Positions 45,655 through 53,925 of a DNA stretch of 64,000 nucleotides are shown here, piece after piece. Position numbers and translations under genes: made by a program. The notes beneath the pieces were generated by a model. The model saw nothing but the letters and a program-made list of their open reading frames with translations. It was not told the origin of the DNA and did not search any database. Source of the stretch: Scyliorhinus canicula (Eukaryota). Each line of letters begins with the position of its first letter. The stretch's first letter is position 1. The stretch lies in contig NC_052168.1 of NCBI RefSeq assembly GCF_902713615.1, positions 18,054,323 to 18,118,322 on the forward strand, in the 5' to 3' direction.

Positions 45655-46154
45655 NNNNNNNNNNNNNNNNNNNNNNNNNNNNNNNNNNNNNNNNNNNNNN
45701 NNNNNNNNNNNNNNNNNNNNNNNNNNNNNNNNNNNNNNNNNNNNNNNNNNNNNNNNNNNNNNNNNNNNNNNNNNNNNNNNNNNNNNNNNNNNNNNNNNNN
45801 NNNNNNNNNNNNNNNNNNNNNNNNNNNNNNNNNNNNNNNNNNNNNNNNNNNNNNNNNNNNNNNNNNNNNNNNNNNNNNNNNNNNNNNNNNNNNNNNNNNN
45901 NNNNNNNNNNNNNNNNNNNNNNNNNNNNNNNNNNNNNNNNNNNNNNNNNNNNNNNNNNNNNNNNNNNNNNNNNNNNNNNNNNNNNNNNNNNNNNNNNNNN
46001 NNNNNNNNNNNNNNNNNNNNNNNNNNNNNNNNNNNNNNNNNNNNNNNNNNNNNNNNNNNNNNNNNNNNNNNNNNNNNNNNNNNNNNNNNNNNNNNNNNNN
46101 NNNNNNNNNNNNNNNNNNNNNNNNNNNNNNNNNNNNNNNNNNNNNNNNNNNNNN
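45655..46154. other. Assembly gap (500 N)
   Basis: Run of n. Confidence 1.
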
Positions 46155-47500: not shown

Positions 47501-47953
47501 GAGGGAGAGGTGGGTGGTATCAACAGAGGGAAATGGAGAGAGGATCGGAGGGGGGAGAGAAGGCAAGGGGCAGGAGTGGGAGGAGAGAGGGGTGGGTGGC
47601 ATGCCAAACAGATCCCCTTCATTTCTCCCTTCCCATTCTCTGATTTCCTCCCTCCATGCTCTGGACACCGCCCCCCCCCCCCCCCCCCCCCAAAAGCACC
47701 AAACCGTCCACTTACCCACTCATTGGACCACCCTTCTTCCTCTCCAGTGATGCTCAGAGATGCTCCTGCCCCTCTCCTTTCCTCACGCTGCGGATCCTCA
47801 TTTCCTCCACATAACCTGGAAGCCCCTGCTCCCCACCATCCACCCACCCAGCATCACCAACTCACACACAGTCCAGATTATTAAGAGGTGTGGGGGCCAA
47901 GTTGAGTCTGACTTCTTCTGTATTTGCCCTCAGTGTGAGTGACCAGTGTGAAG

Positions 47954-48077
47954 ATGGTTGAGATTAACACAGCACTCACTCCATTGGAACTCTATGAGGA
48001 AGATATGAATCTACCAGTGGAGCTGGCAGCCAGGCAGAGGCAGAGGATGAAACAGCGCCTGAAGGAGTCTCCCGCAC
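47954..48077 (+). CDS. FAM227A: FAM227A coding exon 1
   Basis: Acceptor tatttgccctcag| at 47933. Reads MVEINTALTPLELYEEDMNLPVELAARQRQRMKQRLKESPA, resembling human [26 protein letters not shown]...ELENNPP. Ends at a non-canonical donor C|GCATCCTTT (see findings). Confidence 0.75.
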
Positions 48078-48424
48078 GCATCCTTTCCTTGCTAAATCCA
48101 TCAGCAGTGTAGGGATCTTGTCACATTGCAATGTGAAGAAAGCAGAAGACATTGCGAGAGAGTGTCTTCGCGATCGGCATTAGGCGGTTGGGAGTTGTGT
48201 TTTGAGGAATTCCTTTCAGTGAGGGCTGAAGGTGCGTGCCTGTAGATAACAGGCTTTCACCTGGTTGGTGTTTCATGGCTTCCTCATTCAAGCTGACAAA
48301 CATACGGGAAATTGCTGGACCATCGCTTCACCCAAACACACCCCAATGCTTTTGGAGGTTCCAGTGACAAACAAATGCTTTAGTCCAAGATTCTCTGAGG
48401 CATGGCAGGGAAGAGTGAAATTCC

Positions 48425-48739
48425 TTAACCCCGTGCTATACCAGCCCTGGGAGTGTTTGATACGGACGGTGTAGAGGGAGCTTTACTCTGTATCTAACCC
48501 CGTGCTGTACCTGTCCTGGGAGTGTCTGATGGGGACGGTGTAGAGGGAGCTTTACTTTGTATCTAACCCCGTGCTGTACCTGTCCTGGGAGTGTTTGATG
48601 GGGACAGTGTAGAGGGAGCTTACTCTGTATCTAACCGCGTGCTGTACCTGTCCTGGGAGTGTTTGATGGGGACAGTGTAGAGGGAGCTTTACTCTCTATC
48701 TAACCCCGTGCTGTACCGGTCCTGGGAGTGTTTGATGGG
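48425..48739. repeat. ~69-bp tandem repeat (~4.5 copies)
   Basis: GTGTAGAGGGAGCTTTACTCTGTATCTAACCCCGTGCTGTACCTGTCCTGGGAGTGTTTGATGGGGACA. An inverted relative lies at 12715-12810. Confidence 0.9.
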
Positions 48740-49752
48740 TTGCGCTTTTGGGTTGGTTGAATATATAGCCAGTAATATAAACAGAAGTTGTACAGAAGTT
48801 CATATTTATATAGCTCTGTTCATATCCTCCAGACTATCCAAGATGCTTTATAGCTAATGAAACACTTTAGAAGTATAGATTCTGTTACAATTTGTGCGCA
48901 GCAAGTCCCCACAGCCATTGGGGCCAGCCAACCTCAGTTTATTTGTTGTTGGCTTCATGTTAAATATTGGCAAGGCCACTCGGGATAACTCACCATTCTC
49001 CTCTTGAATTGTACCATAGGATAATTTATCAGAGGGACGATGATTCCTCGACTTAACACCTGCTCCAAAGGGTAACACCTCAAGGCTTTGTGTTGTTGGT
49101 GTAATACTAATGTCACTGGACTAGTAACCCAGCAGCCCAGGCGAATGGTCTGGGTTCAAATCCCGCCCTGGCAGCTGATGCAATTTCAATTCCGTTATAA
49201 AGCCTTGAATTGATAGCGACAGTGGCCATGATAACTATCATCAATTGTCGTTTTAAAAGATGCATCTGGTTCACTAATGCTCTCGGCCTGGCCTGCAAGG
49301 GACTCCAGACCGGTAGCAATGTGACTGACCCTTAACTGCCCTCTGAAATGTTCCAGGATAATTAGGAATGGCGAACAAACACCAGTGATGAATAAAGGCA
49401 AAAAACGAACCTCGGATGATGCAGCACTCCACCAGTACCACAGTGAGTGTCCCCTTGGGTTACATGTATGGCAGTCTGTGGAGAGGGGCGTGAATGCAGG
49501 AGGTCCGGGGGCCACATGTGGCCCATCTGGGTTCTGAGTACGGCTCCACGAGACATTTTGTTGACCGTTGCCCATGCGCATCACCACATTCCGCTGATTT
49601 CCATCCGTGTAGTTTTTTTTTCCTACCGGTATGGCTGAAGTGATTCGCACGTAAAGCGAGTGCGAGTAAAGTGAAGAGCGTGCTGATTGCCCACAACATT
49701 GACTGTGAGAGCCGTCCGCTCCCTCTGCGTCCAAAGTGTAAATATTTATTTT

Positions 49753-50535
49753 GGGCAGGATTTACCGAAACGGGAACAATGTCCTATAGTGAGGTCGTTC
49801 AGCCGCCTGTTTCCCGGCGCAGCACCGAGAAACACAATGTTATAAAACGGCTCCCAGGTTAAATAGAGGGCCTGAGCGGGGAACGCGGGGTCGAGGCCGC
49901 ACTGAGCCCAGATTGTGGACAGAGGAGCTCGGCTGGTCAGGAGTCTTCATTGTAGCGAAAGATTTTCCCCCCTCACCCCCTCCAAGACGCCCCTCCCGCA
50001 ACCCCCCAACACCCACGCAGGGCACTGCCAGCCCGATTGTCATCGCACACAAAAAGCAGGCTTGGCACCTTGGCAGTGCCGACCTGACACCCTCCGGTGC
50101 CCTGCCAACTGGCAGTGCCACCTGGGCACCTCAACTTGGCACCCAGATGGCACTGCCAGGCTGTCAAGGACAGGCCCCCCGGGTGGCAGCAGCAGTGCCA
50201 GGGTACCACCCTGCCCAAAGCACATGCTGCTGGGAGCCTCCAATCCCTGGGAGACCCCCACGAGTGCCATTCCGTCTAGTCCCTTTTTTTGGAGACCAGC
50301 ACTGAACGGCGCTCACCTAAGATCTCCAGAGCAAAGGGGATAGATCTCCACGCCTCAGGTAGCTCGGGAATCTGTACATTACAGTGAGACCAGCTGTCTG
50401 GGCGGGATCGCATTAGATCCTGCGAGGCATTGCGAGCCGGGTAGATCCAGGGAGCGGAGTCTCCTGGCTTCTATCGGCCTCATTGCACCGTGGCGAGCTG
50501 CTTTTCGGGCACAGCATGGCCATTCAATTACACTC
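49753..50535. mobile_element. Degraded GC-rich MITE
   Basis: GGGCAGGATTT start, AATTACACTC end, TTT flanks, internal repeated TGGCAC/GTGCCA motifs. Confidence 0.45.
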
Positions 50536-50660
50536 TTTGTTGTTACCATTTGAAGTTGATGACAGTTCTATTAATATATGAATGATTAAGCATTTTCTGC
50601 AAGTCATTATCAAAAATTGAGCAATAAATGTATTTCATCTTATTCATGGGTCATGGTTAG

Positions 50661-52026
50661 TGCCTTACTTCGGTTGTGGGTAAAATGTTGGAAAAGGTTA
50701 TAAGAGATAGGGTTTATAATCATCTTGAAAAGAACAAGTTGATTAGCGATAGTCAACACGGTTTTGTGAAGGGTAGGTCATGCCTCACAAACCTTATTGA
50801 GTTTTTTGAGAAGGTGACCAAACAGGTGGATGAGGGTAAAGCGGTTGATGTGGTATATATGGATTTCAGTAAGGCGTTTGATAAGGTTCCCCACGGTAGG
50901 CTATTGCAGAAAATAAGGAAGTATGGAATTGAAGGTGATTTAGCGGTTTGGATCAGTAATTGGCTAGCTGAAAGAAGACAGAGGGTGGCGGTTGATGGCA
51001 AATGTTCATCCTGGAGTTCAGTTACTAGTGGTGTACCGCAAAGATCTGTTTTGGGGCCACTGCTGTTTGTCATTTTTATAAATGACCTGGAAGAGGGTGT
51101 AGAAGGATGGGTTAGTATATTTGCAGATGACACGAAGGTCGGTGGAGTTGTGGATAGTGCTGAAGGGTGTTATAGGATACAGAGGGACATAGATAAGCTG
51201 CAGAGCTGGGCTGAGAGGTGGCAGATGGAGTTTAATGCGGAAAAGTGTGAGGTGGTTCACTTTGGAAGGAGTAACAGGAATGCAGAGTACTGGGTTAATG
51301 GCAAGATTCTTGGTAGTGTAGATGAACAGAGAGATCTCGGCATCCAGGTACATAAATCCCTGAAAGTTGCCACCCAAGTTAATAGGGCTGTTAAGAAGGC
51401 ATATGGTGTGCTAGCCTTTATCAGTAGGGGGATTGAGTTTCGGAGCCACAAGGTCATGCTGCAGCTGTACATAACTCTGGTGCGGCCGCTCCTGGAGTAC
51501 TGCGTGCAGTTCTGGTCACCACATTATAGGAAGGATGTGGAAGCTTTGGAAAGGGTTCAGAGGAGATTTACTAGGATGTTGCCTGGTATGGAGGGAAGGT
51601 CTTACGAGGAAAGGCTCAGGGAATTGAGGTTGTTTTCGTTAGAGGAGAAGGCTGAGAGGTGACTTAATAGAGACATATAACATAGTCAGAGGGTTAGATA
51701 GGGTGGACAGTGAGAGTCTTTTTCCTCGGATGGTGATGACCAACACGAGGGGACATAGCTTTAAATTGAGAGGTGATAGATATAGGACAGATGTCAGAGG
51801 CAGTTTCTTTACTCAGAGAGTAGTAGGGGTGTGGAACGCCCTGCCTAAAAACAGTACAGTAGTAGACTCGCCAACTTTAAGGGCATTTAAGTGGTCACTG
51901 GATAGACATATGGTTGAAAATGGAATAGTGTAGGTCAGATAGGCTTCAGATGGTTTCACAGGTCGGCGCAACATCGTGGGCCGAAGGGCCCGTACTGCGC
52001 TGTAGTGTTCTATGTTCTATGTTCTA
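50661..52026 (+). mobile_element. CR1 LINE 3' part (RT)
   Basis: SQHGFVKGRSCLTNL...IFADDTK...; TTCTATG tail. Confidence 0.95.
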
Positions 52027-52318
52027 AGTTCAATTTCAATATTGAGACCCACTGAGATGAAGGCGGCCAACTCACCAGCCTGGGTTACCCATCACTGCTC
52101 TGAACCATGCGGGCACTTCTCCAGGGATGGGGTGACATGTGCAGAGTTTGGATTTGCACCAGATGTGGCAGTCTGTAATATGAAGCAATGATGGATGAAG
52201 AGAGGACTGGGATTTGAGGAATGTGCAAGGTAGGATGGGGGGGGGAGACGAGGTGGAGGGTTGAAGGAACATGCTGAGACAGTTTGGCCACATCAAGGAA
52301 AATCTTGCCAATTTCTTT

Positions 52319-52411
52319 GACAAAGAGTCCCCCTACTCGAAACGTCAGCTCCCTTGTCTCTCCACAGATGCTGTCGGACCTGCTGAGATTGTCCGGCATT
52401 TTCTATTTTTG
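52319..52411 (-). mobile_element. Penelope-like terminal fragment flanked by a 14-bp direct repeat
   Basis: Reverse-complement relative of 44237-44353. TTGCCAATTTCTTT at 52305-52318 and 52412-52425. Confidence 0.55.
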
Positions 52412-52449
52412 TTGCCAATTTCTTTTTTGACTTAACTAATTATGTTCAG

Positions 52450-52532
52450 CATTTGTGATTGGTTCAATAAACCTGGTGAACAAGAGGATTCAGCATTTAA
52501 GCGGGATACTGCAGGCTCACCCCCCTGCTTTG
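52450..52532 (+). CDS. FAM227A: FAM227A coding exon 2 (83 nt)
   Basis: ttcag|(P)FVIGSINLVNKRIQHLSGILQAHPPAL|gtgagt, similar to human SCLIGSMHQVNQKIADI. Confidence 0.8.
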
Positions 52533-52599
52533 GTGAGTCAGATCGTCTTGATTTGGTGTAAGAGGCTGTTGCTCCTGCTTTCAACGGGAGAAAACAGAC

Positions 52600-53925
52600 T
52601 GATCGAACGCATGACCCCGGTCCGATACAGAGTGACTGAGACCATGACCCCGGTCAGAAACAGAGTGACCGAACGCATGACCCCGGCCCGATACAGAGTG
52701 ACTGAGACCATGACCCCGGTCCGACACAGAGTGACTGAGACCATGACCCCGGTCAGACACAGAGTGGCCAAACGCATGACCCCGGCCCGATACAGAGTGA
52801 CTGAGACCATGACCCCGGTCCGACACAGAGTGACTGAAACCATGTCCCTGGTCAGACACAGAGTGACTGAGACCATGACCCCGGTCAAAACGGAGTGGCC
52901 GAATGCATGACCCCGGTCAGACACAGAGTGACCGAACGCATGACCCCGGTCAGACACAGAGTGACTGAGACCATAACCCCGGCCCGATACAGAGTGACTG
53001 AGACCATGACCCCGGTCAGACACAGAGTGACTGAAACCATGACCCCGGTCAGACACAGAGTGACTGAGACCATGACCCCGGTCAGACACAGAGTGACTGA
53101 GACCATGACCCCGGTCAGACACAGAGTGACTGAGACCATGACCCCGGTCCGTAACAGAGTGACTGAGACCATAACCCCGGTCAGACACAGAGTGACTGAG
53201 ACCATGACCCCGGTCAGACACAGAGTGACTGAGACCATGACCCCGGTCAGACACAGAGTGACTGAAACCATGACCCCGGTCAGACACAGAGTGACTGAAA
53301 CCATGACCCCGGTCAGACACAGAGTGACTGAGACCATGACCCCGGTCAGACACAGAGTGACTGAGACCATGACCCCGGTCAGACACAGAGTGACTGAGAC
53401 CATGACCCCGGTCCGTAACAGAGTGACTGAGACCATGACCCCGGTCAGACACAGAGTGACTGAGACCATGACCCCGATCCGTAACAGAGTGACTGAGACC
53501 ATGACCCCGGTCAGACACAGAGTGACTGAGACCATGACCCCGGTCCGTAACAGAGTGACCGAATTCATGACCCCGGTCCGACACAGAGTGACCGAACGCA
53601 TGACCCCGGTCCGACACAGAGTGACCGAACGCATGACCCCGGTCAGACACAGAGTGGCCGAATGCGTGATGCCGGTCAGACACAGAGTGACCGAACGCAT
53701 GACCCAGGTCCGACACAGAGTGACTGAAACCATGTCCCTGGTCAGACACAGAGTGACTGAGGCCATGACCCCGGTCCGACACAGAGTGACCGAACGCATG
53801 ACCTGGTCCGACACAGAGTGACTGAAACCATGTCCCTGGTCAGACACAGAGTGACTGAGGCCATGACCCCGGTCAAAAACAGAGTGACTGAGACCATGAC
53901 CCCGGTCAAAAACAGAGTGACTAAA
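52600..53925. repeat. 33-bp minisatellite (ACAGAGTGACTGAGACCATGACCCCGGTCAGAC), ~40 copies
   Basis: Direct reading; 11-aa periodic ORFs. Confidence 0.97.

Follow-up and report, generated by a model that had tools for sequence, protein, structure and literature searches.

The closest described relatives of the element treated here are the few introns of the minor-spliceosome (U12) type that begin with GC and end with AG. Sheth et al. (2006) screened GC-AG introns for GCATCC at positions +1 to +6, found a suitably spaced U12 branch box in most of them and coined the term 'U12-type GC-AG' (PMC1557818). They counted four cases in human, four in mouse and one in fly, 9 among about 1500 U12 introns, with the LZTR1 intron conserved between human and mouse; all of their candidates combine GCATCCT with a poor match of the upstream exon to the U2 pattern (PMC1557818). 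The fly case, CG16941, was listed by Lin et al. (2010; PMC2831892), and Moyer et al. (2020) reported 'almost no' U12-type GC-AG introns (PMC7367187). De Wolf et al. (2021), who describe LZTR1 as 'a unique GC-AG splice site', showed that this site depends on the minor spliceosome and is affected when the minor-spliceosome protein CENATAC is depleted, and that, in a human P120 reporter, a GC-AG minor site is outcompeted by GT-AG (PMC8280824). Here we describe an intron with these features at positions 48078–52449 of a 64,000-nucleotide (nt) stretch of the genome of the catshark Scyliorhinus canicula ('the window'; contig NC_052168.1, positions 18,054,323–18,118,322). The intron lies in the gene FAM227A, and a sequence-only reading of the window had proposed it as a probable U12-type intron with GC-AG ends.

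FAM227A is already catalogued as a gene with minor introns. For human as for mouse, the Minor Intron Database (MIDB; Olthof et al. 2019) lists two of them, located near the 5′ and the 3′ end of the gene, respectively (PMC6717393 Table S1). A single pair of 5′ splice sites is printed for the gene, GTATCC in human and ATATCC in mouse, with the intron of origin unspecified (PMC6717393). The source of this link is the set of tables supplied with PMC6717393; full-text literature searches pairing FAM227A with 'U12' or 'minor intron' returned nothing relevant.

The FAM227A locus and its first coding intron

Protein homology places the 5′ part of FAM227A, from a catshark-like elasmobranch, in the window, because the FAM227A protein of Scyliorhinus torazame aligns to five exons there. 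This protein (622 aa) is the nearest match; its residues 1–154 align at 81–92% identity, and the first coding exon is 86% identical to its residues 1–44. An exon encoding the FWWh domain (PF14922) lies 21 kb past the end of the window, on the same contig and strand. When this exon was searched against protein representatives, it returned matches from sharks to mammals that are named FAM227A by their sources.

The first coding exon occupies 144 nt (47934–48077; this and the following features are on the + strand). Its coding part (47954–48077) starts with the ATG at 47954 and comprises 41 codons plus one nucleotide. These 124 coding nucleotides therefore place the following intron in phase 1. 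The exon ends in ...CCCGCAC at 48077 and the intron begins with GCATCCTTTCCT at 48078, continuing for 4372 nt to its 3′ end, ...TTTTGACTTAACTAATTATGTTCAG, at 52449. The terminal AG (52448–52449) is defined by both the sequence and the RNA contigs described below. The second coding exon (83 nt, 52450–52532) begins CATTTGTG, encodes …P-FVIGSINLVNKRIQHLSGILQAHPPAL and is followed by an ordinary U2-type donor, TTG/GTGAGT, at 52533 (here and below a slash marks the splice site).

Transcript contigs from four runs (X2, X3, X6 and X11), belonging to four different studies, were placed on positions 47700–52700. The RNA nature of the four runs is a guess, and the contigs inform on junctions rather than on level or retention. 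The 144-nt first coding exon is found in many public runs. In each of the four runs examined, one contig joins 48077 to 52450 ('skips 4372, GC..AG') and continues through all of exon 2 (52450–52532); in one run this contig is 2002 nt long and runs on into downstream exons. No base is common to the two sides of the joint (both=0), and therefore the position of the cut cannot slide. Among the joints listed, no other uses the acceptor at 52450. Run X11 is filed under another species label, but over 378 nt its contig shows only four base differences from the window and a single 2-nt deletion; it was not counted as an independent species. The intron at 48078–52449 is real and is spliced at C/GC...AG/C exactly as predicted.

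The coding consequences also agree with the sequence-only reading, which had given the phase, the joined product and the fate of the unspliced frame. Exons joined at 48077/52450 translate as ...KESPA-P-FVIGSINLVNK.... If the intron were retained, the frame would continue as RILSLLNPSAV and reach a TAG at 48110–48112, 11 codons into the intron. The same reading had pointed to the lack of a GT donor at the exon end, and no phase-1 GT occurs between 47990 and this stop; an alternative in-phase GT donor was rejected on that ground.

Splice signals of the intron

The fit of the donor and branch sequences was judged by counting matched consensus positions. The 5′ splice site GCATCCTTT (48078–48086) matches the U12 consensus RTATCCTTT at 8/9 positions; C at +2 is the sole departure, as had been noted, and positions +3 to +9 are perfect. 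Compared with the 9-mer complementary to U1, CAG/GTAAGT, the donor CAC/GCATCC matches at 4/9 positions and has a G neither at −1 nor at +5. The predicted branch-point box, GACTTAAC (52429–52436), is to be compared with the U12 consensus TCCTTAAC: its core CTTAAC is intact and it carries two mismatches further 5′. The predicted branch nucleotide is A52435, the second A of TTAAC; it is 14 nt upstream of the final intron base and is followed by TAATTATGTTCAG. Inspection of the 3′ end of the intron found no pyrimidine tract between the box and the AG, and the earlier description of this region holds in each respect.

By frequency alone, the signals lend the assignment no support. With 2.5 copies expected by chance, the window contains two of GCATCCTT, which is thus no rarer than chance, and CTTAAC-N8-14-AG occurs 23 times against 12 expected. 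Their meaning comes instead from their position, because both fall exactly on a junction that is set independently by the RNA contigs and by the orthologs.

Orthologous introns and the change at position +2

The genomic loci of five orthologs were read at the phase-1 intron preceding the [FL][VL][IV]GS exon, with species names as given by the protein sources and with the spacer counted in nucleotides from the end of the branch box to the AG. Three of the five introns are GT-AG. In Xenopus laevis the donor is T/GTATCCTTGA (T/GTATCCTT), the box is TACCTTAAC and the spacer is 13 nt; the paddlefish Polyodon spathula has C/GTATTCTTTT (C/GTATTCTT), ATCCTTAAC and 12 nt; and the acorn worm Saccoglossus kowalevskii has G/GTATCCTTTT (G/GTATCCTTT; core GTATCCTT), CCCTTGAC and 14 nt. 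The other two introns, both from elasmobranchs, are GC-AG, with C/GCATCCTTCC (C/GCATCCTT), GACTTAAC and a spacer of 10 nt in Heptranchias perlo and T/GCATCCTTCT (T/GCATCCTT), TACTTAAC and 13 nt in Leucoraja erinacea. When the six donors, including that of the catshark, are aligned, G+1, A+3, T+4, C+6, T+7 and T+8 are invariant. Each of the six species has CTTAAC or CTTGAC at a distance of 11–15 nt from the AG.

At this position and phase, frog, paddlefish and hemichordate thus have a canonical U12-type GT-AG intron, and two elasmobranchs besides the catshark have a GC-AG intron with ATCCTT. This bears out the U12-type reading of the catshark intron at the point where it had been proposed to check it, namely the presence of ATCCTT in the orthologs inspected. 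Judged by this comparison, the intron is an ancient U12-type intron, older than the vertebrates and inherited from the deuterostome ancestor. The C at +2 is, on the same comparative grounds, no error of the catshark assembly, because the independent assemblies of Heptranchias perlo and Leucoraja erinacea share it. Parsimony places a single T-to-C change at +2 before the divergence of sharks and skates, in the elasmobranch lineage or earlier. The split between sharks and skates dates back of the order of 250–300 million years. ATCCTT and a CTTAAC box at 11–14 nt have been retained in 3/3 elasmobranchs since the T-to-C change, which fits the prediction of continued use of the minor spliceosome and not that of conversion to the U2 type.

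Two further observations concern the orthologous loci. The Callorhinchus milii locus (L015, GCA_018977255.1) contains only the 3′ half of FAM227A and lacks the N-terminal exons, of which the 10 kb upstream show no trace; the FAM227A model in this assembly is truncated (336 aa), and a Fam20C-domain gene adjoins it upstream on the opposite strand. Between catshark (48087–48125) and Heptranchias (L009:1134–1172), the first ~45 nt of the intron past ATCCTT can be aligned (…GCTAAATC…CAGTG-AGGG). This stretch could reflect slow substitution rates in sharks or an intronic splicing element.

Minor-spliceosome components and proposed recognition

The catshark genome was searched for the small nuclear RNA (snRNA) genes U11, U12 and U6atac. 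All three are present, with scores of 106.7 bits for U11, 117 bits for U12 and 133.2 bits for U6atac, and all contain the standard pairing segments. The 5′ end of U11, (C)AAAAGGG, is complementary to UCCUUU at +4 to +9 of the intron, as is the segment GAAAGGAGAG (AAGGA) of U6atac. The U12 snRNA carries GUAAGGAAAA (...AGUAAGGAAAAU), which can pair with ACUUAAC and leave one A bulged.

These complementarities suggest how the intron would be recognized. U11, and later U6atac, would pair with UCCUUU at +4 to +9, and U12 would pair with ACUUAAC, so that A52435, 14 nt from the AG, would bulge out and act as the branch point. Position +2 lies outside both the U11 and the U6atac helices in the accepted pairing schemes. 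A C at +2 would be tolerated for this reason. On this reading, the T at this position gave way to C in the elasmobranch lineage or before it, and all the other signals for the minor spliceosome were retained. If the human LZTR1 case is a guide, C at +2 probably lowers the efficiency of splicing. For the proposal in the sequence-only reading that the intron may rate-limit expression, the reporter result of De Wolf et al. (PMC8280824) provides indirect support.

Weighing of alternative explanations

Sequence, orthology and the presence of the machinery, from which the class and the branch point are deduced, make it very likely that 48078–52449 is a U12-type intron cut by the minor spliceosome. 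Several points weigh against this assignment. The U12 class is drawn from sequence and orthology only; the branch box departs from TCCTTAAC by two mismatches (GA for TC); the loose U2 branch consensus is matched as well by ACTAAT, just downstream of the box; and there is a T-rich run upstream of the box. In addition, the C at 48079 is an assembly base, as the contigs placed on 47700–52700 leave 48078–48200 uncovered. The last three of these points bear on the two alternatives that accept the junction but dispute the class or the C at +2. The more serious of them, which we nonetheless consider unlikely, is that the ancestral U12 intron has already been converted to the major spliceosome in elasmobranchs, so that the catshark intron is a U2-type GC-AG intron and ATCCTT a mere relic. 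The terminal dinucleotides would allow this, with GC-AG ends making up ~0.8% of U2-type and under 1% of U12-type introns (PMC1557818), and CTAAT near the 3′ end fits yUnAy and is preceded by the T-rich run. Leucoraja, moreover, has an in-phase U2-like donor, GCAG/GTGCGAG, 30 nt downstream of the GC site, and this donor is used by two NCBI skate models. However, U2-type GC donors require a near-perfect match at the remaining positions, and CAC/GCATCC offers only 4/9, with no G at −1 or +5. The two marks of a U2-type GC-AG intron, a fit to MAG/GCAAGT and a pyrimidine tract before the AG, are thus both wanting in the catshark, where the match is 4/9 and the stretch from box to AG holds no tract. 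A relic would also have decayed, whereas three elasmobranch lineages still carry ATCCTT, and CTTAAC at 11–14 nt, long after T became C. Catshark and Heptranchias, finally, have TG and not GT where the skates have their downstream donor.

If the C at 48079 were instead a private allele, or a mistake of the sequencing or the assembly, the minor-spliceosome assignment would stand and the intron would be an ordinary GT-AG U12 intron. No placed read or contig covers 48078–48200, so this base is known from the assembly alone; but Heptranchias perlo and Leucoraja erinacea, in independent assemblies, have the same GCATCCTT at the orthologous donor, and the catshark locus is single-copy, which together make an error or allele very improbable. 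The junction itself would be in doubt only if it arose by reverse-transcriptase template switching, by mis-assembly of contigs or from a processed retrocopy, and all of the evidence for it does come from assembled contigs of runs that are only guessed to be RNA. Template switching was rejected in view of the lack of shared bases at the joint (both=0) and the recurrence of the same joint in four runs from four studies, with whole exons on each side. A retrocopy was ruled out because exon 1, searched together with its flank, occurs only once in the 4.2-Gb assembly. The reading frame is preserved across the joint, and the exon structure matches that of orthologs from hemichordates to frogs. We therefore give an artefactual junction scarcely any credence, and retain the reading of a minor-spliceosome intron with GC-AG ends.

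Gene models and additional features of the locus

The sequence-only reading had expected gene predictors to miss this intron, and this is true of some models only. The NCBI FAM227A models of S. torazame, Heptranchias, Chiloscyllium, Rhinoraja, Pristis, Hypanus and Mobula have the correct junction. Those of Leucoraja erinacea and Amblyraja radiata extend the exon by ten intronic codons (…SPACILLLMNLAVFVTGS) and splice from GCAG/GTGCGAG, an in-phase GT found only in skates and located 30 nt into the intron in Leucoraja (L010:1125–1160). The skate models (P0005, P0084 and P0105) accordingly conflict with one another. Those of Leucoraja and Amblyraja read through both of the U12 donors of the gene, adding CILLLMNLAV after the first and YPFIG after the second, and that of Rhinoraja reads …LPA-L-FVTGS.

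Catshark FAM227A has a second intron of the U12 type, an AT-AC intron, which lies outside the window at about 18173431–18176393 (G000:C23; L016 from about 1622 onward, with the acceptor before 1585 in L017). The preceding exon ends in ...RLPP and is followed by the donor ATATCCTTTTCC; the acceptor is TTTTTCCCTAACTAGTGTATTTAC/A-GACGATGCT. The donor is identical in Heptranchias (L009:68774) and Polyodon (L014:18982).

Within the first intron, very highly repeated and widely transcribed elements occupy 48368–48868 and 50706–52041. In all four runs their summed contig depth reaches 1e4 to 6e5; they contain numerous internal joints and variants and are probably of the short or long interspersed nuclear element (SINE/LINE) type. 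Upstream of the intron, transcripts take two 5′ forms over 47700–47954: the X2 and X3 contigs enter at an acceptor, ...ccctcag/47934, and the X6 and X11 contigs are unspliced from at least 47700 to 48077. About 13 foreign letters precede 47934 in the X2 and X3 contigs, which suggests an upstream exon in the 5′ untranslated region. A run of 500 N (45655–46154), either an assembly gap or a mask, lies 1.8 kb upstream of the first coding exon.

Significance

The catshark intron adds a well-supported and phylogenetically dated case to a very small class. It indicates that a minor intron can retain C at +2 throughout a vertebrate subclass, with ATCCTT and the branch box still under constraint. In practical terms, it accounts for the probably spurious 10-residue insertion (CILLLMNLAV) in some elasmobranch FAM227A models and flags the read-through of both U12 donors of the gene in two skate annotations. 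No new mechanism is revealed. As a tentative suggestion, more doubtful than the assignment itself, a GC donor fixed since before the shark/skate split might rank among the oldest dated GC-AG minor introns and serve as a long-term natural test of tolerance to C at +2. Given the in-phase U2-like GT donor 30 nt downstream in skates, the weakened GC site might even be a first step, now in progress, of a U12-to-U2 conversion or of a regulated competition between the two spliceosomes.

Comparison with known minor introns

The catshark intron has GCATCCT at 48078–48084, AG at 52448–52449 and a U12-like box 14 nt from the AG, and by its sequence it falls exactly within the definition of 'U12-type GC-AG' given by Sheth et al. 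(2006). It shares with the introns of that class, LZTR1 and CG16941 among them, the GCATCCT 5′ splice site, a U12 box at the optimal distance and an upstream exon that fits the U2 pattern poorly. The rarity claimed for such introns in the sequence-only reading is right, although the subtype has had a name and published counts since 2006 (PMC1557818). In contrast to LZTR1 and CG16941, the catshark intron belongs to another gene and lineage, and it is known from sequence, RNA contigs and orthologs. The comparison with LZTR1 also differs in time depth: the GC of FAM227A, common to sharks and a skate, contrasts with the GT retained by frog, paddlefish and hemichordate, which gives a dated switch from GT to GC rather than an observation limited to mammals.

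Canonical U12-type GT-AG introns and the catshark intron have in common ATCCTTT at +3 to +9, a branch box 11–15 nt from the AG, the lack of a pyrimidine tract, phase 1 and deep conservation; the difference is the C that replaces T at +2. U2-type GC-AG introns share the catshark intron's terminal dinucleotides, but they compensate with a near-consensus MAG/GCAAGT, to which CAC/GCATCC (4/9) bears little resemblance.

Within FAM227A itself, the shark gene likewise appears to have a U12 intron near its 5′ end (48078–52449) and an AT-AC U12 intron towards its 3′ end, in agreement with the two minor introns listed by MIDB for human and mouse. The one pair of mammalian 5′ splice sites printed for the gene, from either of its two minor introns, begins with GTATCC or ATATCC, not with GC, and the orthology of the mammalian and shark 5′ introns is based on position in the gene and on colinear mammalian proteins (…HPPSCLIGS). 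The catshark intron is therefore best described as a new, dated example of a rare subtype that was already known, in a gene already catalogued with minor introns.

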